64,000 nt of DNA from positions 32,388 through 96,387 of the forward strand of contig NIVC01003468.1 in assembly GCA_002269645.1 (NCBI GenBank), read 5' to 3'. Numbering within the stretch: the stretch's first letter is position 1; each line of letters opens with the position of its first letter. The DNA is from Macrostomum lignano (taxonomy: Eukaryota). Positions 35,860 to 54,023 of this stretch are shown in pieces. Under the pieces are notes generated by a model. It saw only the letters and a program-made list of their open reading frames with translations, was not told where the DNA came from and searched no databases. Position numbers and translations under genes: made by a program.

Positions 35860-36012
35860 ATGGACACATGTGCAACCGACAGCTATTTCGCGGCGCATCT
35901 GATGGCTGCGTACGGCTGTTCTTGCTCAAGGACACAAGTTGTTCCGAGTGGGATCCCGAATCGAACCCTCGACCTTCAACTCGTGAGTACGAGGCCCTAA
36001 CTATTAGGCTAC
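35860..36012 (-). mobile_element. tRNA-derived SINE, family A, internally deleted copy
   Basis: Reverse complement reads GTAGCCTAATAGTTAGGGCCTCGTACTCACGAGTTGAAGGTCGAGGGTTCGATTCGGGATCCCACTCGGAAC..CCTTGAGCAAGA then jumps to the tail TCAGATGCGCCGCGAAATAGCTGTCGGTTGCACAT, matching 21594-21860. Confidence 0.75.
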
Positions 36013-36306
36013 TGGTTCTAAGTATAAGATATTCTATGGGTTTGAGGTCGGTATGTGATTAAACTACTTTAATTTTGCGGGATGTATTCAGATAAATCCC
36101 GGAGCCATACTTGTATGTCTATGGTTGAAGTTGGGGATGGGGGTGTGGGGGCGAAGCCTTAGGCCTGAGCCTACCGATCTCACCGATGCACTTTAAGTTT
36201 TTAAAACTTTCAACACATTTAAAAAACCCTTTAATTGTCAGTTACTTCTTCTTCCAGTGGTTTTTGGGAGGCTGAATTTCCACCTCATCAACTCGGGGCG
36301 GCGTCA

Positions 36307-39300
36307 TCACCAGTCATCGTAGGCCACGCCTGAGTCCGTGTCGCTCAGCCGCCACAACTTTGAGTCCGCCCGCTGTCGTCCCGGCTGCGGCTCCGAGCTG
36401 GACGCTGCTGCGCACTCGACCAAGAAGTTGGCCAGCGCCGCGAAGGAGTTGGGCTCGTCCGCCTCCGCGCAGCTCAGAGTCAGCCGGTAGAAGCCCGGCC
36501 GCAGAATCCGCGTCCTGATGGAGAGCAGCCTGCTGTTGGACTCTACGGTGCAGAGCTGCTGCTCCGTCCGGTCCTTCAGCGCCGGCTTCAGCACTGCCAT
36601 CGCTCGGACCGTCCCCAGCGTCGGCAGGCGCAGCTCGAACTCGCCGACTGGAGTTTTCAACCAAAACTCCTGCGAGTCGCCGAAGTTGGCGGAGAAGCCG
36701 AACTTTCGAGGACTGCTGCAGAGGCCGTAGAAGCCGCTGAAGTCGGGGAACGGACTGGCGGAGGAGGTCTGGCGGGCCAGGATCTGATAGGAAGCGATCA
36801 CGTCTGACGCGCTGGCCTCATCGTCAGTGCTGGCAAAGACCTGCAGCTCCCAGAAGGTGCCGCTTGTCGGCGGTCTCGCCGTCACGGTTGCTTCGTTCCG
36901 GCGATAGTCCAGCACCGCTGCAATGTGCTGGCCGCTCACTCGCTGCCCAGTTCTCGGGTGAACGAACCGGGCAATGAACTGCTTCAGCGGCTTTCCCGTG
37001 CCTTTGAACTTCAGCACCGCCTCAGTGTACACTTGGATCGATTCTTCCGTGTGGGACACCAACTTCACCAGGTGTCTGTGGTGCCACAAGCGGGGAAATG
37101 CGACCAGCTTCGGTAGCGGTTTTTTGCAGCGAATAAGGAAGTTGGCGAACTCGGTGTACGCGCTCGAGACCGAGTAGATGTCTTTGCAGTTCAGAGTCAG
37201 GCGGTAAAACCCCGCTCTGCTCATTCTAATCCTCACGGTGAGCATCAGGTAGTCCATCTCCACCGAGCAGCTGCTGCTTTGCTGGTCCAGGGCCTTGGCG
37301 AACTGCAGAGTGGGGCTCACCCGCACAGGCATGTAGGTGGGGAAGCGCAAGCTGCACTCGCCGCCGTCCACCTCGATGCAGAAGCCGTCACTGGAGCCGA
37401 ATTCTTTCTTGAAGCCGAAAATGTGCGGGTCAAGCTTCGCGCCGTAGAAGCCGTCAAAGTCCGGGAACGGTTCTTTGTCCACCGGCCCACTGGATTTCAG
37501 GTAGAAGAACGCCAGCCACTCGAGGTGAGCATCTTCGACAGAGGTCAACTCAATGGCGGCGAACAGCCGGAGCTCCCAGTAGGTGCCGCTAGTGGGCACG
37601 CGGACGAGCACCACGGCCTCCCTGCAGCGCCAGTCCAGCACAGCGGCCGCCAGGCTGCTGCGGCACCTCTCGCCTGTTTCCAAGTTGAAGAACGCGGCGC
37701 CGAAGTGGCTCAGCGGATTTTGGGCCGCCCAGAACCGCAGCTTCATCTGGCCGGAGCTGTCAATCAGGGCGCTGCTGTGGGACCTCAGCTGCACGCCCAG
37801 CCGGTAGCAGGCCTCCCGCCGCCTGACTCGGCTGTGAAATGTCTCAAGGTCGATGGGATCCTTCATGAGCTGCCACGGCTTGCTGGCCTCGGGATTCGAG
37901 TTCAGGAGCGGGAAGTGGTCGCTCAGAAAGACCTCGGGAGCAGGCAGAAAATAAAAGTCGGTCTGGCGTCTCTCGAAGACGCCGCTGTCGGAGAAGCAGC
38001 CGGAGCCCAGCAGGCAGTCCATGAAGCCCCATTTGCCGTCCACCCGCACCGCCAGCCAGTCGTGGTTGACTCGAGTGTCCACTGTCAGGGCTTTCAACGG
38101 GCTGTAGCCGAAGTCCTTGGCGAACCCGGTGATCTGCTTGGACGCTACGCCAAAGATTCTATGAAAATATTTAATATTTAAAAGTATGAGGGCGCTGTCA
38201 GGACACAGACAGAAGATTAACAATATCCTGTGCTCGTGCCTTACCTAAGCAGGCAGTGCGCAATGAAGTTGAATTCATTCTTTGCTCCGATGCCGCGCTG
38301 GAGCGCGGACTCGGCATCTCGCAGTGACAGTTGGGCCTTCGTCTCACTGGAGTCGAGTCTGCAGGTACAAGTAGAGTAGAGGACATTATCATCCAAGATC
38401 TTTATCACACCGGCTTCTATTATTTTGGTAATCGGGCGTTGATTTTTGATGAGGCAAAAGTGAAACTAAAAGTGAAGCAGCCTCACGTAATGTTTCCGGT
38501 GATCCACATGTAAACTGCGCGAACCTTCTCCAGCTCGGTGCTGGCAGCGGACTCGATGTAGGCAGCCAGCGATTGCAGCGTCTGCGCCGCTTCCGGTGGA
38601 GCCTGCGGGGTTGTTCGGGCTGGTTCTTTAAGATTTAGCTGTGGGTTTCTAATGATTAGCCACGGTGGGTTGAGAGTGATCTAACCACAGTGGGTTGAGA
38701 GTGATCTAACCACGGTGGGTTGGGAATGATCTTACCACAGTGGGTTGATAGTGATCTAACCACGGTGGGTTGGGAATGATCTAACCACAGTGGGTTGAGA
38801 ATGATATAACCACGGCGGGTTGAGAGTGATCTAACCACGGTGGGTTGGGAATGATCTAACCACGGCGAGTTGAGAGTGATCTAACCACAGTGGGTTGAGA
38901 GTGATCTAACCACGGTGGGTTGAGAGTGATCTAACCACAGTGGGTTGAGAGTGATCTAACCACAGTGGGTTGAGAGTGATCTAACCACAGTGGGTTGAGA
39001 GTGATCTAACCACGGTGGGTTGGGAATGATCTAACCATAGTGGGTTGAGAGTGATCTAACCACGGTGGGTTAGGAATGATCTAACCACAGTGGGTTGAGA
39101 GTGATCTAACCACAGTGGGTTGAGAGTGATCTAACCACAGTGGGTTGAGAGTGATCTAACCACAGTGGGTTGAGAGTGATCTAACCACAGTGGGTTGAGA
39201 GTGATCTAACCACAGTGGGTTGAGAGTGATCTAACCACAGTGGGTTGAGAGTGATCTAACCACAGTGGGTTGAGAGTGATCTAACCACAGTGGGTTGAGA

Positions 39301-42300
39301 GTGATCTAACCACGGTGGGTTGAGAGTGATCTAACCACAGTGGGTTGAGAGTGATCTAACCACAGTGGGTTGAGAGTGATCTAACCACAGTGGGTTGAGA
39401 GTGATCTAACCACGGTGGGTTGGGAATGATCTAACCATAGTGGGTTGAGAGTGATCTAACCACGGTGGGTTAGGAATGATCTAACCACAGTGGGTTGAGA
39501 GTGATCTAACCACAGTGGGTTGAGAGTGATCTAACCACAGTGGGTTGAGAGTGATCTAACCACAGTGGGTTGAGAGTGATCTAACCACAGTGGGTTGAGA
39601 GTGATCTAACCACAGTGGGTTGGGAATGATCTAACCACAGTGGGTTGAGAGTGATCTAACCACAGTGGGTTGAGAGTGATCTAACCACGGTGGGTTGGGA
39701 ATGATCTAACCACAGTGGGTTGAGAATGATCTAACCACAGTGGGTTGAGAATGATCTAACCACAGTGGGTTGAGAATGATCTAACCACGGCGGGTTGAGA
39801 GTGATCTAACCACGGTGGACAGAGAGTGATCTAACCACGGCGGGTTGAGAGTGAGCTAATACTCACCAGCTTGATGTGCTCGTCGATGCGTCTGAGCGAG
39901 CGAAGGTCCGGCTGATCCCCGATCGGCACCAGAGGCCCGAGCTTATTCAATGTAGGAGAAGTGAAAGCTTTATTGTTTCAGCAGCTCCTGTGACTCTCAG
40001 TTCCTGTTTCACCAGCTCCTGTGACTCTCAGTTCCTGTTTCACCAGCTCCTGTGACTCTCAGTTCCTGTTTCACCAGCTCCTGTCACTCTCAGCTCCTGT
40101 CACTCTCAGCTCCTGTCACTCTCAGCTCCTGTCACTCTCAGCTCCTGTCACTCTCAGCTCCTGTCACTCTCAGCTCCTGTCACTCTCAGCTCCTGTCACT
40201 CTCAGCTCCTGTGATTCTCAGCTCCTGTGACTCTCAGCTCCTGTGACTCTCAGCTCCTGTGACTCTCAGCTCCTGTGACTCTCAGCTCCTGTGACTCTCA
40301 GCTCCTGTGACTCTCAGCTCCTGTGACTCTCAGCTCCTGTGACTCTCAGCTCCTGTGACTCTCAGCTCTTGTGACTCTCAGCTCTGCTGCGGGCTGGCTT
40401 TTGCCCGAGCAGATTTAAGTTTATTTTTAACTGAAGTATGATCATAGACTATTTCATTTGCCTGTATTGAGCACAAGAGCCTAACTAAAGGCAAACCGCT
40501 TGGAAATAAGTAAAATAAAATATAAAGTTAAACGTGGCCAAGCAGACATTGGCAAAAGAAAGGCCGAAGGTATTACGGCGCATATTCAGGGCATTAAGCC
40601 CAGTGTTTCAGTACAGACCTGTAACAGTGGCGTCGCAAGCACTCCGGATTTAAATGAAGAGCAGCGAGCACCAGCAATCGGCAGCAGCAAAGTCTGCGGG
40701 CTCACCGTCCCTCAAGCATGCCAAGGTTGTGACAGAAGCGCCAGCTCATCAACAACAGGCAAAACTGGCAACATCGCCGTCTCGCCAGCAAGCCAAAGTG
40801 GTCTCGGGAGCAGATGGCCTGGTCTCGGGAACAAGTCAACCGACAAGGAGTGCAAATGGACCAACGCGCGCAATGGCAGGTGCCATGGAGATCGAGCGCT
40901 TGGAGGTAGGAAGCAACTTCTCCAGGTGGTTCGACAGATTTTCAATCGTTGCGCAGTTCTATGCATGGGATGCGACAGCGATGGCCCAGATGCTTTTGAT
41001 GCGTCTTTCCACGGCCCTGTATGACTCACTGGCCGACCAGGCCTCGCCCAAGAAGCCTAGTGAACTGTCATTCACAGAAATAGAGCAGAGTCTGCGTGGT
41101 ATCTTGGTTCCAGCCACATTCGTCTTGGCGGAGAGATATTCTTTCCAGCAGTGCTCTCGGAAGTCTGGGGAGGACGTTCGCGCGTACGCAGAAAGAGTCC
41201 TAAAGGCTGCCGAGAAGTGCCAATTCAAGGATAAAGATGAACGGCTAAGAGACCAGTTCATCTGCGGACTGGCTGACCAAAATGTGATCGGCAAGCTGCT
41301 GGTCAAGGACCATCTGGAGCTCAGCTTCAAGGATGCAGTTTCTGAGGCCGAGGCACATTCAGCACTCGTATCTACAGATATTATGAAAAGCGCGCCGAGA
41401 TCCGAGAGAGCCGCGGTCATGAAAATAGGGATGTTCAAGCCCAAGTCCAGATCGCAGCCCAAAGGAGCAAACAGGCAGCAGTCACAAAGCCAAAGTTCAT
41501 CGTGTTTGCGCTGTGGAACTATCCATGGAAAGGAATCGTGTCCAGCCTACGGAAAGACGTGCCGTAAGTGTGGAAAGCAAAATCATTTCCAGAAAATGTG
41601 CCGTTCAAAAATTAATGTCACCAGCCAAAAAAGGAATGCTTCGGTTCAACACCTAAGCGAGCAGTCAGACCCTGTCTTCATGATTGGAGCAGTTTCAAAA
41701 GAAGCTGTCTCTCAGGATGCCATCACAGTAACACTGGATTTCTTGTCATCAAATGACAAAACATCAATTTCGTGCCAAGTGGACACCGGGGCAGCAGTGT
41801 CCGTCTTGTCAGATCGAGTCTGGAGGCAAATCGGTAGTCCAGAACTGCAGCCTAGTGGCATCAAGCTAACGGGATACACGGATGCGCATCAGTTCAAAAT
41901 GTTGGGCCATTTCATCGGCAAAGTTAGCTATCAAGGAAAAGTGCATCGATTACCTTTTAAAGTTGTTCGATCTGATCGCTTGTTCGCACTACTCGGTAGG
42001 GATGTTTTAACCATAGAGATTGACTTCGCGAAGGCATATGCAAGCGATGTGGCTAATGGCAATGCCGGGTTTCAAGCGAGGCTACAACTCATTCCGGATG
42101 CACAACCTAAATATATCAAGGCGCGGCCCATACCGTTTGCTTACAAGGATCGCTTGAAGGAGGAGATTGACAAGCTGCAAGCAGATGGAATCATTGAGCC
42201 TGTGACTTTTTCTCAGTGGGCATCACCAATAGTTATCGTCCCCAAGGCTGATGGCAGGCTAAGAATCTGTGTGGATTACAAGCAAACATTAAACCCACAG

Positions 42301-45300
42301 TTAATGAAGGATAGTCACCCCACACCGACTCCTGAAGAGGCTTTTGGTACAGTGGCAGGATGCCGGCTTTACACGATATTGGATTTGAAAGCCGCGTACA
42401 ATCAAGTTGAACTTGATGAGGATTCCAAACCTCTCACTGTCATGTCTACGCCCTTTGGGAATTATCAGTACAACCGTCTGGTGTTTGGGATTCGGACAGC
42501 TCCGAGCATATTTCAACGCTACATCAGCCATGTAATCCAGGGTATTGAAGGTTCAATCGCCTACGTTGATGATATTCTGATTGGTGGTGAATCCGAGAAG
42601 CAACTTAAATATCGCGAGGATCAAGTGAGAGAACGTCTTGAGCAGCATGGCCTTAAGGTTAACGAAGAGAAATGCCAGATTTGTCAGTCTCGTGTGCGTT
42701 TCTTAGGGTTTATCTTGGACAGTGGCTTGATTCGACCGGATCCTGAGAAAGTGAGAGCTCTTCGAGAGATGGAAGTCCCAGAGTCGATGGCAGAACTGGA
42801 ATCATTCATTGGGCTCGTCCGTTTTAGTGGACGATTTGTGCCAAATTTTTCACACTACCTTGAACCGCTAACTAGATTAATGTGCAAAAGAAATGATTTT
42901 CAATGGGGATCTGAGCAAGATGAGGCATTCATGCGGATCAAGTCCATGCTGACGGAAAATACAGCTCTGGCAAATTACGACCCGAAGAAACCTGTGACGT
43001 TGGAGTGTGACGCTTCCCAAAAAGGACTGGGCGGAGTTCTGATTCAAGACAACATGCCCGTTTTGTACATCAGCAAGAGACTGTCGGAAGCTGAGAAAAA
43101 ATATTCTCAGATCGAGAGGGAGGCTCTAGCAATTATCTGGTCAACGCAAAGGTGCCAGCGGTTTCTTGCAGGGCGTCACTTCACTCTAATCACGGATCAC
43201 AGACCGCTTACGTACATTTTTGGTCCAAACGAAGGCTTGCCTATGCGCGTGTCAGCACGACTGCAGAGGTGGGCGATATCGTTGATGGCTTTTGACTTTA
43301 CTATCGAATATCAGAGGTCAAAATTTATGAAATCAGATGCCTTGTCACGATTGTTAAGGGATGATACAGTGCAGACATACACCGTCGGGAGTATCGAACT
43401 ACCTTCAACAATCATATCTGCTGAGGAGGTAAAAAAACAATCAATGGATTGCCCAGAAATTTTTCTGCTGAAAGAAGCTATTCGGTCCGGTAACTTCAAC
43501 CATCCTAGTATTCGTCCTTTTAAGGCAGTTGCGGATGAACTAACGATTGTGTCAGACATTGTCATCAGGGATACGCGAATCGTTCTGCCGTAGAGTCTGA
43601 GGTTTTCAGCAATTCAGACAGCACACAGCACCCATTTGGGCATAGATCGAACTTTGTCACTTTTGAGATCCCAGTTCTGGTGGCCCGGTTTGGATAAAGA
43701 CGTGAAACAGCACATCGGAAGCTGCGTAACCTGTAAGATGGTTAAGCCACGCAATCGAAGCTTCCTGACATCTTGGCCAACAGCCACGGAGCCATACGAG
43801 CGTGTACATGCTGATTTTGCTGGTCCTATAGACGGCCAGTACTTGTTAATACTTGTGGATGCAATGTCCAACTACCCAGAAGTACATTTGACAACCAATA
43901 TGGAATCGTCGACAGTAATTTCCAGATTTCGAAGGACGTTTTCGCAGTGGGGCGTACCAAAGACTCTTGTGACTGATAATGGGTCCAGCTTCGTCTCAGC
44001 GGAGACAACGCAATGGTTGAAAGCTATTGGTTGCAGCCATGTAACAACACCTCCGTACCACCCTCAGAGTAATGGGGTGGCTGAACGATTTGTCCGTACT
44101 GTGAAAGAATCCGTGTCAGCATTAGGTTTGAGTCAACAAAACATTGACAGATTCCTGCTGTTTTATCGATCATCAAAAGGAAACGATGGCCGGACACCGT
44201 CGGAGAAGTTTTTAGGTCGAAACATTCGGACTCCTTTGATGTCGGATTTTTCTGGAGATGACGAGGTCGTGTACAAGACAGAAAGAGCTACGTCGTTGGC
44301 TAGAGTCGTCTTACCGACTGGTCGAAACACGGCTATTATCAAGCTCGACAACGGCGTGTACAAAAAGGCACACCGGGACCAGATGCAAAGTTTCCAGTCT
44401 GGTGGCGACAAGGGCACTGACTCGGAACAACTGGTTGCTGACGGTGCTAGTGAGGTGAATCAACCTCTAGATACGTTCCCTAGAGAACCAGAGCCGGTGC
44501 AGGAGCCGGAGCAGCAGCAACCGCAACCTCGGAGAAGTGAAAGACTGTTGACTTAGCCAAGAGTGCATTACAAAGAATGAACTGTAAACTTTTGAAGTGG
44601 GGAGGTGCTGCGGGCTGGCTTTTGCCCGAGCAGATTTAAGTTTATTTTTAACTGAAGTATGATCATAGACTATTTCATTTGCCTGTATTGAGCACAAGAG
44701 CCTAACTAAAGGCAAACCGCTTGGAAATAAGTAAAATAAAATATAAAGTTAAACGTGGCCAAGCAGACATTGGCAAAAGAAAGGCCGAAGGTATTACGGC
44801 GCATATTCAGGGCATTAAGCCCAGTGTTTCAGTACAGACCTGTAACAAGCTCCTGTGACTGCTCTTGTGACTCTCAGCTCCTGTGACTCTCAGCTTTTGT
44901 GACTCTCAGCTCTTGTGACTCTCAGCTTTTGTGACTCTCAGCTCCTGTGACTCTCAGCTTTTGTGACTCTCAGCTCTTGTGACTCTCAGCTCCTGTGACT
45001 CTCAGCTTCTGTGACTCTCAGCTCCTGTGACTCTCAGTTCCTGTTTCACCAGCTCCTGTCACTCTCAGCTCCTGTGATTCTCAGCTCCTGTGACTCTCAG
45101 CTTTTGTGACTCTCAGCTCTTGTGACTCTCAGCTCTTGTGTCTCTCATCTCCTGTGACTCTCAGCTTTTGTGACTCTCAGCTCTTGTGACTCTCAGCTCT
45201 TGTGACTCTCAGCTTTTGTGACTCTCAGCTCTTGTGATTCTCAGCTCTTGTGACTCTCAGCTCTTGTGACTCTCAGCTCCTGTGACTCTCGGCTCCAATG

Positions 45301-45442
45301 GGCACTTTCAAACACCGATGCTAATTACCCGCGCACCTTCGACTCGACAGAACTTGATCGAGTTCGCAACTTGGGCTACTGAGGTGTACGATTTACTTAC
45401 CGAATGAGGCGGCTGGGCCGCCGCACTGGCACCGCAGCCCAT
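36307..45442 (-). CDS. KY/hillarin-like transglutaminase-fold protein 1 (catalytic Cys absent), N-terminal MGCGAS
   Basis: Exons 45442-45401 (MGCGASAAAQPPHS, GTAAGT donor), 39941-39867, 38602-38487, 38358-38245, 38158-36307; phases 0,0,2,2 are compatible. Motifs IDEH, ELEKVRAVYMWITGNI, GFAK, HDWLAVRVDGKWGFMD, FYFLPAPEVFLSDHFP, then repeated beta-rich modules. First exon assignment is less certain. Confidence 0.85.
38655..39858 (+). repeat. 25-bp minisatellite TGATCTAACCACAGTGGGTTGAGAG, ~48 copies
   Basis: Fills KY-like-1 intron 2; variant block duplicated at a 400-bp offset (39035/39435). Confidence 0.96.
39980..40384 (+). repeat. 16-bp minisatellite CAGCTCCTGTGACTCT, left half (split by Gypsy)
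   Basis: Same unit resumes at 44848. Confidence 0.95.
40654..43593 (+). CDS. Gag-protease-RT-RNase H polyprotein of the Gypsy element
   Basis: Zinc knuckle region CLRCG..H..C and CRKCGKQNHFQKMC, protease VDTGA, RT RICVDYK..LN and YVDD, RNase H ECDAS..EREAL..TDHRPL. Confidence 0.95.
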   Translation: MKSSEHQQSAAAKSAGSPSLKHAKVVTEAPAHQQQAKLATSPSRQQAKVVSGADGLVSGTSQPTRSANGPTRAMAGAMEIERLEVGSNFSRWFDRFSIVAQFYAWDATAMAQMLLMRLSTALYDSLADQASPKKPSELSFTEIEQSLRGILVPATFVLAERYSFQQCSRKSGEDVRAYAERVLKAAEKCQFKDKDERLRDQFICGLADQNVIGKLLVKDHLELSFKDAVSEAEAHSALVSTDIMKSAPRSERAAVMKIGMFKPKSRSQPKGANRQQSQSQSSSCLRCGTIHGKESCPAYGKTCRKCGKQNHFQKMCRSKINVTSQKRNASVQHLSEQSDPVFMIGAVSKEAVSQDAITVTLDFLSSNDKTSISCQVDTGAAVSVLSDRVWRQIGSPELQPSGIKLTGYTDAHQFKMLGHFIGKVSYQGKVHRLPFKVVRSDRLFALLGRDVLTIEIDFAKAYASDVANGNAGFQARLQLIPDAQPKYIKARPIPFAYKDRLKEEIDKLQADGIIEPVTFSQWASPIVIVPKADGRLRICVDYKQTLNPQLMKDSHPTPTPEEAFGTVAGCRLYTILDLKAAYNQVELDEDSKPLTVMSTPFGNYQYNRLVFGIRTAPSIFQRYISHVIQGIEGSIAYVDDILIGGESEKQLKYREDQVRERLEQHGLKVNEEKCQICQSRVRFLGFILDSGLIRPDPEKVRALREMEVPESMAELESFIGLVRFSGRFVPNFSHYLEPLTRLMCKRNDFQWGSEQDEAFMRIKSMLTENTALANYDPKKPVTLECDASQKGLGGVLIQDNMPVLYISKRLSEAEKKYSQIEREALAIIWSTQRCQRFLAGRHFTLITDHRPLTYIFGPNEGLPMRVSARLQRWAISLMAFDFTIEYQRSKFMKSDALSRLLRDDTVQTYTVGSIELPSTIISAEEVKKQSMDCPEIFLLKEAIRSGNFNHPSIRPFKAVADELTIVSDIVIRDTRIVLP
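43594..44556 (+). CDS. Integrase of the Gypsy element, in frame behind a TAG
   Basis: HHCC (AHSTHLG..CVTC), RVHADFAG, LVTDNG, SNGVAERFVRT; same frame as the upstream polyprotein. Confidence 0.92.
   Translation, partial: SLRFSAIQTAHSTHLGIDRTLSLLRSQFWWPGLDKDVKQHIGSCVTCKMVKPRNRSFLTSWPTATEPYERVHADFAGPIDGQYLLILVDAMSNYPEVHLTTNMESSTVISRFRRTFSQWGVPKTLVTDNGSSFVSAETTQWLKAIGCSHVTTPPYHPQSNGVAERFVRTVKESVSALGLSQQNIDRFLLFYRSSKGNDGRTPSEKFLGRNIRTPLMSDFSGDDEVVYKTERATSLARVVLPTGRNTAIIKLDNGVYKKAHRDQMQSFQSGGDKGTDSEQLVADGASEVNQPLDTFPREPEPVQEPEQQQPQPRRSERLLT
44848..45295 (+). repeat. 16-bp minisatellite, right half
   Basis: Continuation of the 39980-40384 array with more CTTTTGT/CTCTTGT variants. Confidence 0.95.
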
Positions 45443-46499
45443 GGTGCAAACGAGTGAGTACTCTGCTCCAGAGGTTAACTGGCACCATGCAGCAACCCTG
45501 CAGAGCCAGAACTGCAACTATTGAATCCTTTTCAAGTGGAACCGAAGAGAGAGAGTAGTATTGAGAAATAATGCAGACGTTAGATAAGGTTGGCAAAAAA
45601 ACTTAGGTTAGCTATCCACTTATTCAACTTGTGCTAACTGATAGCTGCATGGTTACCAGCCCAATGTACTGGAGCAAGGCCCGGCCTGCATTATCACGCT
45701 TGGAGCATAGGTAAGCTACGCATAAAACTCAGATAATTGCTCGTAAAAATATGGCTTGGAGTTTAATTAATGAATAGAATTATACTTTCAGCGCTATCTC
45801 GCTAACTTGGAGTCAGATCGGAGTTTGAGCTCGCCAGCAAGCAGATGCGGGCAATACCTTTTTGGACCAAAGTATGCAATCGTAAAAATATTATAATGTC
45901 TACTAATAGACAACATGTTAATTATGTCTAGTGCAGTGACCCGGGTCGGTTCGACTGCCCAGCCCAAGTACTCGTACTATAAGGTGGTACCAGCGGGCGT
46001 TGTGACACTCTGCCAATGTGATATAACTGCTAACAGGCGTCATGACGCTCTGGGTACGAAGTTACTCGTTTTGGCGTGATGACGCTCAAAACTCGCGTTG
46101 CTCCTAGAGGTCTGGTATATGCTCTCCCTGGCGTTATGACGCTCTGGCAAGAAGTTACTGTAGCCTAACAGGCATCTCAGAAAAGAATGAGTACTCAAAG
46201 CAGGCGGCTTATCAGTGGCCGAGTTACCGAACGGTGACGCTAACTGATCAGAACAGGGGCGGACTTGCACGTAGGTCTCAGAGCGGTGCTGGACTTGCTG
46301 ATCTTTTGGCTTCGAGTCGATGTCTACTATTTACTTTTCTGGCCCGTTATCGGGGTAACTTAAATATTTCGTCTGTTTAATTTTAACTGAAACTGACTCG
46401 GAGAATTGCTCAGACCGCTGTGAGTCGTGTGGCGTCGCAAAAGAAAAGCGGGCGCGAGAAGGAAAAACAAGAGCGCACGATAATCAATACCGACACAGG

Positions 46500-46620
46500 C
46501 CTGGGGGGCAGACGGTCCCACCGGCCAAGCTCACCAATAAAAGAGACGCGGCCCGGCCAGCCAATCAAAACCCCGCCTTTTGAGAGGGTCGCAGCCAACC
46601 AACTCAGAGCACGGGCCAGG
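46500..46620 (-). promoter_or_regulatory. Candidate promoter of KY-like-1 (CCAAT and GC boxes)
   Basis: AGCCAATC and CCCCGCC within ~20 bp, ~1.1 kb upstream of the MGC ATG. Motifs only, no transcript evidence. Confidence 0.3.
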
Positions 46621-46938
46621 GCGCACGGCTGGGGAGGGGTACGCACAAAGCCAGACCTTGCCACTTACGCCAACCCCCCAGCCAGCCCCAAAGTGCAACG
46701 CACTTTTATATTTCATTCAATTTGCTCGTCTGCAGCGCAATCAAACCCGGTGCAAAAGTGGGTTAATAAAAAAATACGCTCGCACCTGCGGCTCTCAGCT
46801 ACATATTGAAGAGCTTTTACAGGCCTCTGAAGCCTTTTTCAACCTGCAGCTCATCTGGATCTGAACATCCGAGTCGGCTGGCAGCTCGCCAACTCGCAGC
46901 CGCTCCAGCCTCACGTGCTCAGTTTGAGCAGCCGTGAA

Positions 46939-47191
46939 GCAGATCGGGTACTGCACCGGCTGCTTCATCGGCTGCAGGTACTCAATGAGGAAGTTGGCCA
47001 GGAAGTCCTACTTGAACTTTTTTAACAAATAAAGCTTGTGGAAACCAGACTCGACCATCAGTAGGCTGAGCACAAGACGGTTGCCAGCCAGTTCTGGAAG
47101 ACAAAACTCCTGCATCGTCTGCCCAGAGGCGATTGAAAATTTTAGTCCACAAGAACAGAAGCCGCAGCTCCAACTCGCCGGATCGAGCTTG
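46939..47191 (-). pseudogene. Decayed fragment of a KY-like C-terminal module
   Basis: SGELELRL then, after a frameshift, LVLSLLMVESGFHKLYL..K*DFLANFLIEYLQPMKQPVQYP, matching AGEHELRL..ISLRMFEAGFHKLEL..AIFLIECFNPMEKRRPFP of KY-like-2; in-frame TAG at 47008-47010. Confidence 0.7.
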
Positions 47192-47981
47192 CAGCCAACA
47201 GGAGCAGATAATTCACCATTTTACCCTCGATTTTGAACAAGGAGAACTTCGAAACCGACAAAACTACTCTTCAATATTGACACTCTATGGTCGGGAACTC
47301 AAAATCTGCAATCAATATTGACAGATCAAGCTTCAATTTTGATCAACTCTGGTTCAATTTTGACAATGCACGTTTAGTCAACTTCTCCTGGGAGAATTCG
47401 GTAACAAAGTAATCCAATGCAAACCTGAACGGGGCTGAAGTTATCTGTGCAAAATCAGCTGATTCTGACCTTGCTTTTGGAATCTACTAGTACAATTATT
47501 GATAAAAAATGTTTTTCTCCATCATTTTACACACACAAACTAAAATAGCCTGACTGGTTGGGCCGCAAAGTCCGATTCTACTCGTATTTTGACAGAGTTG
47601 CTTCAAAACTGACACTCTATTGTTTGTGTACCCCAAAAGTCCGCTTCATTTTTGACAACTAATCAATATTGAACAGTTTTCAATCCACTCCTTTCCGTCA
47701 CTGATGTTGTGTTGCGGTATTGTATCTAAAGCCCTTGCTGTAAGTAGCCCCACCGCTACCCGATGCCCTTGAATCTGCAACACCATATCGTTTGATTGAA
47801 TTTGTTCAAGTTATGCTGTGATGTGTTCAACTGTGTGTTTCGTAGCTAGGGACATGACTGACGGAATCACAGATTAACATTGAGTTTTACTTTCTATAAA
47901 CGATGTTGAATTTGCTCTGTTTCTAAAATTGGTTACTTGCGTCTTGAATAAATAAATATACGTCGTACTTTCATTTATTTT

Positions 47982-48101
47982 GGTCAGTGTAATCGACGCA
48001 GTTGTCTATGGTCCAGACACTGCGTCTCTTATACACTGACCTGCTTTTTGTTCACGCAGCCCGCGCGTTGTTTAATGCATTCAAACCATAGACAACTGCG
48101 T
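47982..48101. other. Nested inverted repeats (hairpin/MITE-like)
   Basis: 17-bp perfect IR 47996-48012 / 48085-48101 (ACGCAGTTGTCTATGGT) overlapping a GGTCAGTGTA..TACACTGACC IR. Confidence 0.65.
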
Positions 48102-48383
48102 TTCTAACACAGTAACAAACACGAGTTAAAACACGCACGGATTGTGAAATTTGGAACTTCGTTGATTTAAGTCTGGAGATGATTAAGTTTGGGATTGTCA
48201 AGTTTGAGGATTTTGAAGCTTGGGATTGAAGTTTGGGGACTTCGAAGTTTTGAATTATGTAGTTTGGGATTGTTCAGTTTAGGGATTGTGAAGTTTGGGG
48301 ACTGTAAAGCTTGGGAATTCTACAACCGCCATAAAGTGTTTAAAAAGCTTACTAAATATTGGCGGCATTTTCGATGGTTTTTA

Positions 48384-48516
48384 TCTGTAAAGTTTCAGCT
48401 CCAACTGATATTGCAACAGGATACCGTACTGGAAAGGCTGACAATGCAAATTTATCCCAACTTTCAGCCTTTATAGTACGGCATAGCAGTATCAGTTGGA
48501 GCTGAAACTCTACAGA
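48384..48516. mobile_element. MITE-like element with 31-bp inverted arms
   Basis: TCTGTAAAGTTTCAGCTCCAACTGATATTGC (48384-48414) versus GCAGTATCAGTTGGAGCTGAAACTCTACAGA (48486-48516), 2 mismatches; no TSD confirmed. Confidence 0.55.
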
Positions 48517-49230
48517 CAGAAACTTACAAGTGTTCACAATGACAGAACTATTGAGTTTTGAACTTATCCGATGTGAGGGAGTGTCAGTGTGAGGGAGGGC
48601 TTTGGGCACATACGGACTCGTTGAGTAACCTTGACGAACTTTTAGCAAACTGAATTAAAGAAAGAAACAAATTCGTCCTGTGTCCCCCAGGAACCTGACA
48701 ATTTTCTTTAGTAATTCTGGAATAAGGCAGTAAGTATATTTAAAGAATATATTCGCAGAAAATTTAAAACAATTTTTGGGTTTCTGTTGTGTACCAGCAT
48801 CAGTAAAGTGGTAGATAACTTTAAATTGTTTTGTTTTGTTTTGTTAGGCACAAAAAATCCAAGATATGAAGATTAAGTACTCTTAAATTAGTGCTTCAGA
48901 ATAATATAATTTTTGATCTCTGAATATAGTCGTAAAAACTGGGATTAATAGAAATTAGTCCGAACTGAATTTGAACGCAGGGGTTGTTAGAAAAGCTTTT
49001 CCGGATAAATAAAGGAGGATAAAGATACAAAGTTACCCAAGTTACCCAAGACTTCTTTAGGATTTTCGCCATTCGAAAGAAAAGTAGTGCACTGCATGCA
49101 CGTACTGCATGGACTTCTTTTTACTGCATACAGCTGAATAAACATTAAAAAAATTTAAATAAACATCAAATCCCATGCAATAACTCATCTTCAACATTAT
49201 TGTCACGTTTTATCAGCTTGATTGAACTAG

Positions 49231-52200
49231 TTACAACACCTTGAAGGTATACACCGCTGGCAGGGAAGCAGCATTCTCGTTTGAAGATCCGAATACGTTA
49301 ACAGCTTCGGTTTTAAATCCGGTTTTCACTCTCGCACTGAACTGCTCGCCATTCTTTTCAAAAGTTGTGCCATTTACCGTCGCCTTTCTGAGGCTGGGGG
49401 AGGCCAGCCTGATCTCAACCTCCGTGTTTCTCGGCAGCTCTCCATCACGCGGTTCCAGCAGCAGCACTCTTTCGTCAGTGGCTCCAAGATGCCAAGCAGG
49501 AAACGGACGCCGCTTCTCCATCGGGTTGAAGCACTCGATTAAAAAGATGGCCACTCTTTCGGTATGATAGTTGGTCCCCCCACTAGAATTTTCCTTTCTC
49601 GTGCCGATTTTCTCGCAGTATAGTTCAAGCTTGTGAAAGCCGGCTTCGAACATTCGCAGGCTAATCCTCATGAAGTCGCCATCGATCTCGACAAAACTCA
49701 TGTCGTTATTGTTGGCGCCGCTTTCCCCTGACATAAAGTTTGTTTGTGCAAAAACGCTTCGAGCCACTGGCAACCTGAGCTCGTGCTCACCTGCTTCAGC
49801 CTTGATGTGAAACCTGCGGTCGGTACCGAAATCTTTGCTAAAGCCAAATCTCTGCGGATTTGAATACAGACCAAAATACTCGCGTTCTTTGAGCTCTGGA
49901 AATTTCCAAGGGTCACGCAGCGGCTTTGTGCATTCAAGCAAGTATCGGGCCACAGGTTTGATGAAACCGTCGTCGCTGCAGAACAGCTTCAGCTCATAAA
50001 ATCCTGCGTGCTTCATCAGCAAGCTGATTGACACGAACTTGTCGGTGACTTCCAGTGCGCACGACTGTTTTTCCGGCTCATCCTCGCCTGAAAACTTCAT
50101 CTTGACCGATGCCTTGGGAGCGAAATCAGGTTGGATGGGAAATCTCATTTCATACTGACCGCCTTCCGGCTTGAGCCAAAAACTGGAAGTCTCTTTAAAA
50201 TCACTTTCAAATCCGAACCTCGCTGGATCATTGTAGATCCCATAGAACTCATACTCTCCGGAAGTGGGCAGGCGCCTGGTTTTGAGCAGTGGATTGGTGC
50301 ATTCGATGAGAAATCGTGCCACAGGTTTTTTGTAACCGAAGTCGTCGCAATACAGCACTACTGTGTAAAACCCGGAGCGTTCCATTAGCAAGCTGATGAT
50401 GACCGCCTTACTTGTGACTTGAAGAATGCAAGACGATTTTTCGGCGGGCTCACCCCTAGTGCTGAATGTGACTTGAGTTGATGCGGCCCCTTTCAGTGGA
50501 CGCGACAAAGGAAACACGATTTCGTGCTTGCCTTGCTCCGGCTTCATATAGAATTTCTGTTCCCTGGGTATTTCAAAGCCGAACGCTTCAGGACTGTGGA
50601 TGAAGCCGTAGTGGTCGTTTGAATCTGGAAATTCTCTTGTTCCAGAGTCGCGCCGAAGCTTTGGGCACTCGATGAGAAAGCGAGTCGCAAGATGCTTTTC
50701 AGAATCATCTGCATCGGCTTCTCTGAAGAAGACTGTGAGGATGTAGAAGCCAACACGGGTGAGTCGCAAGTGCACCGTCAGAAAATCGTTGGTGATCTCA
50801 AGCACACACAACTTCTTATCAGGCTCCGAGTCACCTGCGAATTTAATTGTAGCTGATGCACTAGTTCGAATCGACAGTGGGATCTTGAGCTCGTATTCGC
50901 TGCTCTCTACTCGGATCCAAAATTTCTGATTCGAGCAGAAGTCACTTGGATATCCAAAATTCCGCGGATCCTGATCGATTCCATAGTGGCCGTCAAAGTC
51001 TGGAAAGTCGGAGCGGCGCGAGAAGGCAAGAGAGCGCAGCTTATAGGACACCAGGCAGTCACTTTTCGAGGCGTTCTCGATGGTGGTCCCGAATACCTGC
51101 AGCTCATACTCGTTTTCGCAGTCCGGTGGCCTCGCTGTTACCGTGGCTTCGTTCGTTGCGCGGTTTAAAACAGTCGCAATGTACTTTCCACTACTAATTC
51201 TGGTTCCTGTGTTGGGATCTACGAATTTGGGTTTAAAAACTGTGAGTGGCTTGCCCGTTCCTCTGAATTTAAGGGTCACCTCTCCATTCACTTCAATCGA
51301 TGCCTTTTTGGTGTGGGAAACAAGCTCGACATTGTGCTCGAAGCAGCCTCTTCTTCGACTTGGTCGTTCGATGAAGGAGAGAAATTCAATTGGCTCGTTG
51401 AGCAGTTGCCATTTCTTGCTAGCTTCAGGGTTTGATTCCATACATGGCAGGTGATCCTCAATAAATATTTCCGGGTCGGTCAAGAAAAAGAAGTCAGTCT
51501 CATTTCTTATAAAATTTGAGTTGTTTTCAACGTACCCTGCACCCCAGGTGCTCTCTATGAACTTCCATTGATTGTCTATCTTCACAGCGTTCCAGGCATG
51601 GAGCTCTTTTAATTTGAAGTTGGCAGAGTCGCTGCTGTCTCCCTTCGAGTAGCCTATTATTACCTCGCACTCGATTCCCATAAGCCTAGAATGAAAAACA
51701 TTTTACAAGGGTTGGATTTTGACTAAAAATTTTTGAAAATGAACCAGATCAGCAATCTTCAGTAGCATTGCCTGAAGCGCTGAGAAATATTTACGTAAAA
51801 AGTTATGAAATCTTAACTCACTCGCAAAGCTTTTGCATTAAGCGTGCGTAGCCCTCACAGACGCATACTCGGTTTTTCAGCACTGACTCAGGATCATTGG
51901 GAAGACGCTGTTCAAAGTCCGAAAGAGACTTTACGTCGTATCTGATTGTTTTGGGTGTATTCTATATTGCTGATTGTGCAGTGGAGTTGTCTTTTTAATT
52001 ACAAATAAAATAAAAAAGCTTACGAAATGTTTCTTGTAATCCATTTATAAGCAGCTCGAACTTTTTCGATGTCGGTTTTTGCAACTTCGCACAGGTGAGC
52101 AGCCAATGACTCCAGTGACGTTGTGGCATGTCCTGGAGTCTGTTAAACGAGGAAAGAATCTTTGCAAAGACAACATATTTGGGTAGAATATGATTCAAAA

Positions 52201-54023
52201 AAACAAAACGTTACCACAAAAACATGTGAGTCGATTATTTGAAAAGCTTCAAAATCAATCGATATTTTTTTCTTGTCAGTTGACTGGGCCGAGTTTTCAA
52301 ACTGATTGGTCGTCGTTTCAGCTGAATTAGAGGGCTTTTCTTCAGTGGTCGGCGGACTCGGATGCACTTGATCCATAGCTGGATCAGAGGGCTTTTCTTC
52401 AGTGGTCGGCGGACTCGGATGCACTTGATCCGTAGCTGATTGAGCGGGCTTTTCATCAGTGGTCGGTGGACTCGGATGCACTTGATCCGTAGCTGAATCT
52501 GAAGCCTTTTCTTCAGTGGTCGGTGGACTCGGATGCATTTGATCCGTAGCTGATTGAGCGGGCTTTTCATCAGTGGTCGGTGGACTCGGATGCACTTGAT
52601 CCGTAGCTGATTGAGCGGGCTTTTCATCAGTGGTCGGTGGACTCGGATGCACTTGATCCGTAGCTGATTGAGCGGGCTTTTCATCAGTGGTCGGTGGACT
52701 CGGATGCACTTGATCCGTAGCTGAATCAGAAGGCTTTTCTTCAGTGGTCGGTGGACTCGGATGCACTTGATCCGTAGCTGATTGAGCGGGCTTTTCATCA
52801 GTGGTCGGTGGACTCGGATGCACTTGATCCGTAGCTGAATCAGAAGGCTTTTCTTCAGTGGTCGGCGGACTCGGATGCACTTGATCCATAGCTGGATCAG
52901 AGGGCTTTTCTTCAGTGGTCGGCGGACTCGGATGCACTTGATCCGTAGCTGATTGAGCGGGCTTTTCATCAGTGGTCGGTGGACTCGGATGCACTTGATC
53001 CGTAGCTGAATCTGAAGCCTTTTCTTCAGTGGTCGGTGGACTCGGATGCATTTGATCCGTAGCTGATTGAGCGGGCTTTTCATCAGTGGTCGGTGGACTC
53101 GGATGCACTTGATCCGTAGCTGATTGAGCGGGCTTTTCATCAGTGGTCGGTGGACTCGGATGCACTTGATCCGTAGCTGATTGAGCGGGCTTTTCATCAG
53201 TGGTCGGTGGACTCGGATGCACTTGATCCGTAGCTGAATCAGAAGGCTTTTCTTCAGTGGTCGGTGGACTCGGATGCACTTGATCCGTAGCTGATTGAGC
53301 GGGCTTTTCATCAGTGGTCGGTGGACTCGGATGCACTTGATCCGTAGCTGAATCAGAAGGCTTTTCTTCAGTGGTCGGTGGACTCGGATGCACTTGATCC
53401 GTAGCTGATTGAGCGGGCTTTTCATCAGTGGTCGGTGGACTCGGATGCACTTGATCCGTAGCCGAATCAGAAGGCTTTTCTTCAGTGGTCGGTGGACTCG
53501 GATGCACTTGATCCGTAGCTGAATCTGAAGCCTTTTCTTCAGTGGTCGGTGGACTCGGATGCACTTGATCCGTATCGGCAACAGGTCGCACCTCGTTTTG
53601 TTTTGATTTCCAAGGCTTTTGTTTATTTTTATGTTGGAGGGTTTTTTGTTTCACGATGTTACCTCTTCGCTAGAATAGTTTGTACATGTAGAGTCCTTTT
53701 CTGACAGTGGAAGAGGTTGCACTTTATTTTTTCTCAAACCTTTAGACTTGAAAGTATCGCCATAGTTTTTTTTGAGTCGACTGCTCATGATTTTCACAAT
53801 TCGTACCTCCTTTGATTGTCCGACTGAAGCTCGGTTGTCGTCGATACTCATTCTGAGGATCTTCATTAACGTAGCAAGAAATGTTGACAGGTGAATTCTC
53901 GCGACCTAATGATCCTGGTCCTATCGGCTCTTTCTGTGCTTTAACATTGATGACAATCTGAACACTCGGAGTTTCGAGGCCGTTGGAACTGTGCGGCGTC
54001 GATCGGCTTGGGTAGCAACCCAT
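49231..54023 (-). CDS. KY/hillarin-like transglutaminase-fold protein 2 (Cys-His-Glu triad retained), N-terminal MGCYPS
   Basis: Exons 54023-53807, (53518 or later acceptor, minimally 52321)-52215, 52139-52024, 51941-51822, 51685-49231; phases 1,0,2,2. Motifs IIDSH, DIEKVRAAYKWITRNISY, VCVCEGYARL, GYSKG, HAWNAVKID, FIESTWGAG, FFFLTDPEIFIEDHLP; four tandem C-terminal modules ending in FL(I/L)EC-like motifs. Confidence 0.88.
52330..53577 (-). repeat. 57-bp (19-codon) minisatellite TDQVHPSPPTT(E/D)EK(P/A)..SA, 22 units, 9-unit higher-order duplication
   Basis: Stop-free in the KY-like-2 frame; units 4-12 recur in the same order as units 13-21. Confidence 0.95.

Follow-up and report, generated by a model that had tools for sequence, protein, structure and literature searches.

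Two neighboring genes of the flatworm Macrostomum lignano encode proteins related to the vertebrate protein KY (kyphoscoliosis peptidase), and in one of them a lysine stands where the catalytic cysteine is expected. This raises the question of whether the two genes form a distinct, undescribed system of an enzyme and a regulatory pseudo-enzyme, as a preliminary description had proposed, or whether they are the ordinary outcome of gene duplication. The genes lie in a 64,000-nucleotide stretch of contig NIVC01003468.1 (the window); because the contig belongs to a flatworm nuclear genome, we discarded the possibility that the genes are prokaryotic or viral. The locus carries two KY-like genes, both on the minus strand, in the same orientation and 3.8 kb apart: gene 1 (36307-45442), coding for 732 residues, and gene 2 (49231-54023), coding for about 1461.

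Structure and family of the two genes

The exons of the two genes, and the relic of a third copy that lies between them, are as follows.

Gene 1
45401..45442, minus strand: exon 1, MGCGASAAAQPPHS, encoding a predicted signal for N-myristoylation of Gly2 and S-palmitoylation of Cys3; the NCBI RNA-based model P0001 begins identically
39867..39941, minus strand: exon 2 (75 nt), LGPLVPIGDQPDLRSLRRIDEHIKL; agrees with P0001
38487..38602, minus strand: exon 3 (116 nt), N-terminal helices of the transglutaminase-like core
38245..38358, minus strand: exon 4 (114 nt), with the motif RGIGAKNEF, in which Lys104 occupies the position of the catalytic Cys
36307..38158, minus strand: exon 5, remaining core (H148, D163), four Ig-like_KY stretches and stop codon

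Third copy
46828..47127, minus strand: relic of a KY-like copy, last Ig-like domain and C-terminal part (match to P0004, 36% identity, E 4e-10)

Gene 2
53807..54023, minus strand: exon 1, MGCYPSRS..., whose start is predicted to be dually acylated; L003, the second genomic copy, also has MGCYPS
53663..53739, minus strand: exon 2 (77 nt), in our reading the sole in-frame combination of acceptor and donor found
52215..53615, minus strand: exon 3, disordered Pro/Thr/Glu-rich linker, then ISIDFEAFQIIDSHVFV; the exact acceptor (53615) is uncertain
52024..52139, minus strand: exon 4 (116 nt), with 0 differences from L003
51822..51941, minus strand: exon 5 (120 nt), with the catalytic Cys (VCVCEGYA)
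49231..51685, minus strand: exon 6, remainder of the triad (His and Glu), five Ig-like_KY stretches and, before the stop codon, the conserved C-terminal domain

The introns of gene 1 contain a very young LTR retrotransposon and satellites.

Both proteins exceed the Pfam gathering scores for the transglutaminase-like core, PF01841 (47.1 bits for gene 1 and 65.7 bits for gene 2; cut-off 23), and for PF23265 (Ig-like_KY), found C-terminal to the core (101.8 bits over four stretches in gene 1 and 140.1 bits over five in gene 2; cut-off 27). The domain and motif pattern is far above chance, and the membership of both genes in the KY-like family, as first suggested, was borne out. The top non-flatworm matches were kyphoscoliosis peptidase-like proteins of Haliotis, Mizuhopecten, Saccostrea and Branchiostoma (E 1e-78 to 1e-60). 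Vertebrate KY and the KY-like proteins of molluscs, amphibians and amphioxus share the same architecture, a PF01841 core followed by PF23265 domains, although only about 30% of residues are identical to those of the mollusc proteins. Gene 2 differs from all of these by the linker encoded in exon 3, in which a 57-nt (19-aa) unit is repeated in tandem 22 times (52320-53574). A literature search for KY or transglutaminase proteins of Macrostomum gave nothing relevant.

All splice sites in the two genes are GT..AG, and three introns around the core domain fall at identical alignment positions and in the same phases (0, 2, 2). The earlier picture of two same-strand paralogues with matching introns thus held, a 116-nt exon in both being followed by one of 114 nt (gene 1) or 120 nt (gene 2). 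The exon aligned to gene 1 exon 3 is present not only in gene 2 (116 nt) but also in a homologue from the bivalve Mactra (inferred length, 116 nt). Because the 116-nt exon is ancestral and is found in a bivalve, we rejected the matching introns as a mark of a recent or special duplication. The two proteins are only about 35% identical, and in a neighbor-joining tree gene 1 sat on a long branch as sister to the remaining M. lignano copies (P0004, P0099 and gene 2).

The second genomic copy, L003, holds gene 2, the relic and gene 1 in unchanged order; it is about 95-98% identical to the window, within one recently duplicated genome. The relic carries an in-frame TAG in the window and TGG at the same place in L003. 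Tandem KY-like arrays also occur in abalone, in amphioxus and at another M. lignano site; the models P0245 and P0108 each fuse two units, and KY-like proteins of Haliotis have consecutive accessions on one contig. Very probably, genes 1 and 2 are members of a flatworm-lineage tandem array of KY-like genes and owe their adjacency to duplication. The array would hold genes 1 and 2 plus the decayed third fragment, the two genes having been born by duplication at the DNA level with the ancestral exon structure of the family kept. Their products would consist of a variable disordered linker, a transglutaminase/papain-like core and a rod of Ig-like_KY domains, in this order.

The catalytic site and its loss

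Gene 2 has the motifs VCVCEGYA, LHAWN and FIESTWG, with C/H/E at the aligned triad columns (Cys632-His673-Glu688), as in 27 other family representatives. Its triad is complete, as originally noted, and on the strength of these residues gene 2 is predicted to be catalytically competent. The triad of human KY is Cys225/His267/Asp282 (PMC13434911); the positions are shared with gene 2, which has Cys/His/Glu at the aligned columns, and in our reading Cys236 and Cys243 of human KY are matched in gene 2 by Cys at +11 and +18. At the third triad position gene 2 has Glu, as do the Haliotis and rotifer homologues, whereas Asp takes this place in others, some molluscs among them. The catalytic core also aligns by sequence with bacterial transglutaminase-like putative cysteine proteases (such as PDB 9crn and 3isr), the alignment of gene 2 with 9crn_A (E = 9e-11) including the VCxGYA and HAWN motifs. 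These proteins, however, are prokaryotic and lack the MGC start, and the core of gene 1 is no longer a significant match to them, nor to any PDB entry in the sequence search.

In gene 1 the motifs read GIGAKNEF, NHDW and FMDCLLG. The alignment places K104 opposite the catalytic Cys, with H148 and D163 in the other two columns, so that the triad is incomplete; the replacement of Cys by Lys with His and Asp retained, reported in the preliminary description, was confirmed. The conserved residues nearby (the SYD and TWG motifs) have also been lost, as has the family's conserved C-terminal domain; in lacking the nucleophile and this domain, gene 1 differs from KY and the KY-like proteins. The idea of a hidden exon restoring the Cys was rejected, because a search of the gene 1 introns with the regular expression Cys-x-x-[YFW] found no alternative Cys-bearing exon, and Lys at the nucleophile position stands. 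K104 is retained in all gene 1 copies. AlphaFold2 predicted the core of gene 1 with a pLDDT of 86-97; helix 106-117 follows just after K104, and H148 and D163 lie on or beside adjacent strands. The model also contains beta-sandwich repeats, and its Foldseek matches were all of the Ig type; since generic Ig folds dominated when the full model was compared with the PDB, nothing was returned on the core and the search was uninformative on it.

Judging from sequence comparisons, loss of the Cys is common in the KY-like family: several other members have A, S, T, K or a gap where the nucleophile is expected, and its loss recurs in Mytilus, Solemya and Mactra. No KY-like neighbor of the inactive Mactra homologue was found within 10 kb upstream or 6 kb downstream. 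Cyk3 of yeast, hillarin of leech and Drosophila, and LTD-1 of C. elegans are also transglutaminase-like, with catalytic sites that are inactive or untested. Like them, gene 1 would be a eukaryotic cytosolic protein with a core devoid of catalytic residue(s) and acting by binding; Cyk3, for example, binds Rho1-GDP (PMC3718969). By comparison with the inactive domain of the Cyk3 type, a non-catalytic role in binding or scaffolding is the most likely one for the gene 1 paralogue; a role for it in Rho signalling or cytokinesis would be pure analogy. None of the three proteins was among the close matches of genes 1 and 2, and their accessory domains are SH3 (Cyk3) or LIM and W180 (hillarin, LTD-1), in contrast to the Ig-like_KY repeats of genes 1 and 2. 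Catalytically inactive transglutaminase-like domains are an already described class (PMC3718969), which speaks against a distinct, undescribed system.

Constraint and transcription

Across all 732 aa, the gene 1 model agrees with PAA51300.1, an NCBI protein derived from RNA-seq (100% identity; BOX15_Mlig003007g4; for the annotation method, see PMC5730564), and for this reason the objections that gene 1 might be untranscribed, or might have a first exon without MGC, failed. Concern over the expression of gene 1 was in fact met by the reverse situation, in that the pseudo-enzyme has an RNA-based NCBI model and the putative active enzyme has none.

Gene 1 might nevertheless be a decaying paralogue under relaxed selection, becoming a pseudogene rather than a functional pseudo-enzyme. 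Its long branch in the tree, the loss of the nucleophile, of the SYD and TWG motifs and of the C-terminal domain, the very young LTR retrotransposon and satellites housed in its introns, and a 1-bp deletion in a C run that truncates the L003 copy to 521 aa are all in line with decay. The 732-codon frame in the window, however, is intact and has an RNA-based gene model, every copy keeps K104 and MGC, and the core is predicted by AlphaFold2 with high confidence. Moreover, comparison with the second copy gave an omega of 0.39 (binomial p = 0.01; from 26 differences), and gene 1 apparently has fewer non-synonymous changes than under neutrality. The frameshift, which may be an assembly error or real decay, sits in a homopolymer, where long-read assemblies often err. 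We consider it quite unlikely that gene 1 is decaying. Rather, it is a fast-evolving paralogue, predicted to fold and apparently under constraint, which would have lost its nucleophile, the neighboring conserved residues and the C-terminal domain, and have evolved faster, while still being transcribed.

The reading frame of gene 2 is intact and conserved in L003. Exon 6 showed 8 differences over 2455 nt and 0 indels, as against 1.5-3.3% mismatches and 3-7 indels in the flanks, so that the coding exon is 4-10 times less diverged (Fisher p = 7e-4 for the 3′ flank and 8e-10 for both flanks). The repeat array has 22 units in the window and 12 in L003, and since the two differ by whole 57-nt units, the array stays in frame. 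No gene model in the NCBI annotation covers gene 2, either in the window or in the second genomic copy. An exact look-up of its large-exon ORF found it not on record, a database of 5.8 billion proteins held no stand-alone exact or near-exact gene 2 protein, and in UniProt it occurs only inside P0254, a fused ab initio model.

These absences would be expected if gene 2 were silent or recently inactivated, the locus expressing the non-catalytic gene 1 alone and the intact frame reflecting youth or gene conversion. The adjoining decayed relic also fits this explanation, as does an omega of 0.83 against L003, a value that comes from 8 differences and is uninformative. Against silence, however, the 816-codon exon is stop-free, the six exons have canonical splice sites, exon 6 is free of the indels seen in its flanks, and the repeat array varies with the frame kept. 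Tissue- or stage-restricted expression would also account for absence from a whole-worm annotation in which novel transcripts with an RPKM < 0.5 were dropped (PMC5730564). Inactivation of gene 2 is, in our view, unlikely, and the M. lignano reference, as annotated at NCBI, lacks an intact, conserved gene of 1461 codons.

The Met-Gly-Cys start and the question of pairing

Both proteins start with MGC (MGCGASA in gene 1 and MGCYPSR in gene 2), as the preliminary description stated, and both starts fit the myristoylation pattern G-{EDRKHPFYW}-x-x-[STAGCN]-{P}. With G2, C3 and S6 in both N-termini, the proposed acylation signal is present at the sequence level, the attached lipid being a prediction only. 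In textbooks, M-G-C-x-x-S marks a protein for N-myristoylation during translation and for subsequent palmitoylation of Cys3. Because both proteins keep this ancestral motif, both are predicted to be N-myristoylated at Gly2 and palmitoylated at Cys3, and dual acylation would anchor them at the cytoplasmic face of membranes. Src-family kinases (Lck, Fyn) and G-alpha i/o subunits share the M-G-C-x-x-S N-terminus with genes 1 and 2, but the likeness is confined to the anchoring motif, with no homology past the first six residues.

The start codon of gene 1 has A at −3 and G at +4 (Kozak context), and the RNA-based model begins at Met-Gly, with an out-of-frame upstream ATG 46 nt before the start. 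This start is conserved in the copies P0251 and P0252, and MGC is found in every copy; P0252, a model from another assembly, has an in-frame N-terminal extension that would bury the motif. The MGC start is common to invertebrate KY-like members, whereas the amphibian KY-like proteins found here start with MGR. Among the 40 best homologues, 24 start with MGC and 32 with MG, and 45 of 158 matches conform to the PROSITE-type pattern for myristoylation; their sources are scallop, oyster, abalone, mussel, rotifers and amphioxus. Since the 24 include molluscs, rotifers and amphioxus, the MGC start is, on this sequence evidence, ancestral to the KY-like family, and its conservation in flatworm, mollusc, rotifer and amphioxus proteins points to ancestral membrane anchoring. 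We found no mention of the MGC start of KY-like proteins in the literature, and the conserved, putative dual-acylation motif of the invertebrate members is apparently undescribed so far.

Could the two genes form a functional module, in which a membrane-tethered, active gene 2 is regulated by its neighbor through heterodimerization or competition for substrate? They are adjacent on the same strand, 3.8 kb apart, with MGC in both; the whole arrangement is kept in L003, gene 1 seems constrained, and inactive transglutaminase-like domains can regulate, as Cyk3 does for Rho1 (PMC3718969). However, the pairing of an active with an inactive member is conserved as a unit only between copies that are about 95-98% identical and belong to one recently duplicated genome, and its persistence therefore says little. 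In the other M. lignano tandem pair (P0245) both units appear active, the MGC start and the loss of Cys are independent, recurrent traits of the family, and the two proteins are only 35% identical, gene 1 being without the C-terminal domain. Also, gene 1 has a transcript model and gene 2 has none, so that co-expression is unsupported. We therefore regard a functional module as very unlikely. The proposal of a distinct enzyme and pseudo-enzyme system was not upheld, as MGC and Cys loss are both family-wide and recurrent and tandem arrays are usual. Adjacency of the two genes would reflect their origin by tandem duplication, functional coupling being undemonstrated.

What is new here is minor, namely the unannotated gene 2 and an apparently undescribed dual-acylation motif in an otherwise known family, and current understanding of the KY-like family is unchanged. 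The vertebrate member, KY, causes myopathy, and to our knowledge its biochemical activity is still unproven. Because the nucleophile has been lost repeatedly, the family offers natural experiments on what the KY fold does apart from catalysis. There is also a slim chance that the invertebrate KY-like proteins represent an undescribed, bilaterian-wide class of dual-acylated, membrane-tethered, transglutaminase-like proteins, in which recurrent non-catalytic paralogues would regulate, or compete with, active enzymes at the same membranes. If so, the two M. lignano genes would serve as an example of this class that is tractable and ready for transgenesis.

Gene models of the KY-like pair

Gene 1 and gene 2 encode two proteins related to kyphoscoliosis peptidase (KY) in Macrostomum lignano, a free-living flatworm. 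Between 26307 and 55442, the window matches M. lignano contig NIVC01003468.1 (assembly GCA_002269645.1, Mlig_3_7) at 100% identity. Both genes were rebuilt from the sequence and lie on the minus strand; their products are 732 and about 1461 residues long, respectively, and every intron in both is bounded by GT..AG.

Exons of gene 1 and gene 2, as rebuilt from sequence (window positions)
45442-45401, minus strand, gene 1 exon
39941-39867, minus strand, gene 1 exon
38602-38487, minus strand, gene 1 exon of 116 nt
38358-38245, minus strand, gene 1 exon of 114 nt
38158-36307, minus strand, gene 1 large exon
54023-53807, minus strand, gene 2 exon
53739-53663, minus strand, gene 2 exon
53615-52215, minus strand, gene 2 exon
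52139-52024, minus strand, gene 2 exon of 116 nt
51941-51822, minus strand, gene 2 exon of 120 nt
51685-49231, minus strand, gene 2 large exon

The three introns that flank the core-domain exons occupy the same alignment positions and have the same phases in the two genes, which bears out the preliminary description of same-strand paralogues with matching introns. The 116-nt exon is also present in the bivalve Mactra, so that the gene structure common to the pair is ancestral.

From end to end, the rebuilt protein of gene 1 matches NCBI PAA51300.1 (BOX15_Mlig003007g4) without a single difference (100% identity). Since the NCBI annotation of M. lignano was derived from RNA-seq and transcriptome mappings and not ab initio (PMC5730564), the first exon, encoding the Met-Gly-Cys (MGC) start, and the exon bearing Lys104 (K104) are both supported by transcripts. 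Moreover, no alternative exon supplying a Cys emerged when the introns of gene 1 were scanned by pattern. Thus, none of three departures from the proposed gene, a different Cys exon, a different first exon or lack of transcription, was found. An upstream ATG (45486-45488, minus strand; 9955-9957 in L003, the second genomic copy of the region) precedes the start of gene 1 by 46 nt; it is out of frame, and its context is weak (T at -3). In P0252, a protein model from another assembly, a 1-nt difference brings this ATG in frame, giving MVPVPSGAECSLVCT-MGCGAS, and the MGC motif would then become internal. Two UniProt models of gene 1 copies differ in the core region. In P0002 two exons are left out, each in frame: that of 75 nt and the K104-bearing one of 114 nt. 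P0253 retains RGIGAKNEF with K104 but is missing the end of the 116-nt exon, from VRAVYMW on, and most of the 114-nt exon, as far as ALQ. These skips may be real isoforms or prediction artefacts.

Gene 2 is not called as a gene in either NCBI copy (the window contig or L003), and no stand-alone protein was found in the databases searched; it is present there only within P0254, a fused ab initio UniProt model that chains gene 2, a decayed third KY-like copy (the relic) and gene 1. Because the NCBI annotation discarded novel transcripts with an RPKM below 0.5 (PMC5730564), expression of gene 2 may be weak or limited to a tissue or stage. The gene contains a coding tandem repeat (52320-53574, minus strand) of 22 units of 57 nt, ATDQVHPSPPTT[E/D]EKP..., with a higher-order period of 513 nt. 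About 12 units are found in L003, so that the copy number varies in frame between the genomic copies.

Domains, catalytic residues and possible mode of action

Against the Pfam gathering cut-off of 23 bits for Transglut_core (PF01841), gene 1 scores 47 and gene 2 scores 66; for Ig-like_KY (PF23265), where 27 bits are required, their scores are 102 and 140. Their top non-flatworm homologues, from abalone, scallop, oyster, amphioxus and frogs, are named kyphoscoliosis peptidase-like. In the alignment, the gene 2 segments VCVCEGYA, LHAWN and FIESTWG match the columns of the human KY triad, Cys225/His267/Asp282 (PMC13434911). Gene 1 has K104 in the Cys column and retains H148 and D163, in agreement with the earlier claim that the triad is kept in gene 2 and that in gene 1 the nucleophile is replaced while His and Asp remain. 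In addition, gene 1 is without the conserved SYD and TWG residues beside the triad and without the C-terminal domain of the family. AlphaFold2 models the gene 1 core with pLDDT values of 86-97, with a helix (residues 106-117) directly after K104 and with the His and Asp on or beside adjacent strands. Judging from this predicted structure, the gene 1 protein looks like a folded pseudo-enzyme and not a wreck.

An MGC start is incompatible with a signal peptide and would place both proteins in the cytosol, where a myristate attached to Gly2 and a palmitate attached to Cys3 would anchor them to membranes. Possibly, the gene 2 product is an active cysteine-dependent enzyme, set off from the membrane by a disordered linker of 22 units of 19 residues. 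The gene 1 product probably acts non-catalytically. Transglutaminase-like domains without catalysis are an established class, as exemplified by Cyk3, which binds Rho1-GDP (PMC3718969); its domain is catalytically inactive, and the gene 1 core likewise has no nucleophile. The proposed coupling of an enzyme to a regulatory pseudo-enzyme found no support, as no evidence links the functions of the two genes.

History of the locus and its second genomic copy

In a neighbour-joining tree of the core domain the M. lignano copies cluster; gene 1, on a long branch, is sister to (P0004, (P0099, gene 2)), P0004 and P0099 being two further protein models. By this grouping, the duplication is specific to flatworms, and gene 1 changed at a faster rate afterwards. 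The relic (46828-47127, minus strand, 300 nt) lies between the two genes and corresponds to the last Ig-like domain and C-terminal part of a KY-like gene; one of its codons, TGG (Trp) in L003 and P0254, is an in-frame TAG in the window.

L003 (contig NIVC01001391.1) has gene 2, relic and gene 1 in unchanged order, at about 95-98% identity. Its gene 2 retains MGCYPS, the Cys-bearing exon and an undisturbed reading frame, and every gene 1 copy retains MGCGAS and the Lys. At L003 13137, the gene 1 copy (BOX15_Mlig003007g1) lacks 1 bp of a CCC run and the annotated protein is cut to 521 residues; either the sequence was misassembled here or this copy is truly decaying. The divergence counts between the window and L003 are small. 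In the large exon of gene 1, 11.5 differences are synonymous and 14.5 non-synonymous, an omega of 0.39 and a non-synonymous deficit (binomial p = 0.01). The large exon of gene 2 has 0 indels and differs at 8 of 2455 nt (omega 0.83, uninformative), as against 1.46% divergence and 3 indels in the 3' flank (Fisher p = 7e-4) and 3.3% and 7 indels in the 5' flank (both flanks pooled, Fisher p = 8e-10).

For tandem paralogues, the two genes are strikingly unlike in composition, with about 59% G+C around gene 1 (36001-38000) and about 42-47% around gene 2 (48001-52000); the former accounts for a spurious antisense ORF of 300 codons (37279-38181). Intron 1 of gene 1 holds a Ty3/gypsy-type LTR retrotransposon (40385-44847, plus strand, antisense to the gene) with 242-nt, 100% identical LTRs (40385-40626 and 44606-44847), a 5-bp target-site duplication (AGCTC), a gag-protease-RT-RNaseH ORF (40654-43593; in-frame TAG at 43591-43593) and then an integrase ORF (43636-44556). 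It is absent from L003 and thus inserted very recently. The element interrupts a 16-nt satellite (39982-40384 and 44861-45295), and intron 2 contains 48 copies of a 25-nt satellite (38653-39859); both arrays are shorter in L003. Elsewhere in the window are an ORF with IBR (RBR E3-ligase-type) domains (13334-14608, minus strand), a reverse-transcriptase fragment (59865-60821, minus strand) and, downstream of gene 1, a protein-kinase gene (about 26307-31722, NCBI record annotation), the counterpart of which at the same position in L003 has kinase and RGS domains.

The pair within the KY-like family

An exhaustive HMMER search returned 13,376 representatives at E <= 0.001, and 441 at E <= 1e-30. 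The MGC start is found in 24 of the 40 best homologues (MG in 32/40), and a PROSITE-type N-myristoylation pattern fits 45 of 158 hits. These sequences belong to bivalves, gastropods, rotifers and amphioxus; a Met-Gly-Cys-x-x-Ser start is thus ancestral to this KY-like branch. The catalytic Cys was replaced independently in several representatives, by Thr in Mytilus, by Ala in Solemya and by a gap in Mactra; others have Ser, Ala or Lys in this column. Adjacent units also recur: Haliotis asinina has two KY-like proteins with consecutive accessions on one contig, an amphioxus "KY" model is a fusion of two adjacent units, and so is the M. lignano model P0245, both units of which appear active from their sequences.

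Thus, neither the MGC start, nor the loss of the nucleophile, the tandem arrangement or the gene structure is special within the family. Since these features recur and inactive domains have already been described, the view of the pair as an undescribed system was not upheld; the observations of the preliminary description stand, its interpretation only in part. We conclude that gene 1 and gene 2 add two new members, with family-typical features, to an already known family. No description of an N-terminal acylation motif in KY-like proteins was found in the literature searched. The small additions made here are an unannotated gene, gene 2, and a conserved, predicted acylation motif of KY-like proteins.
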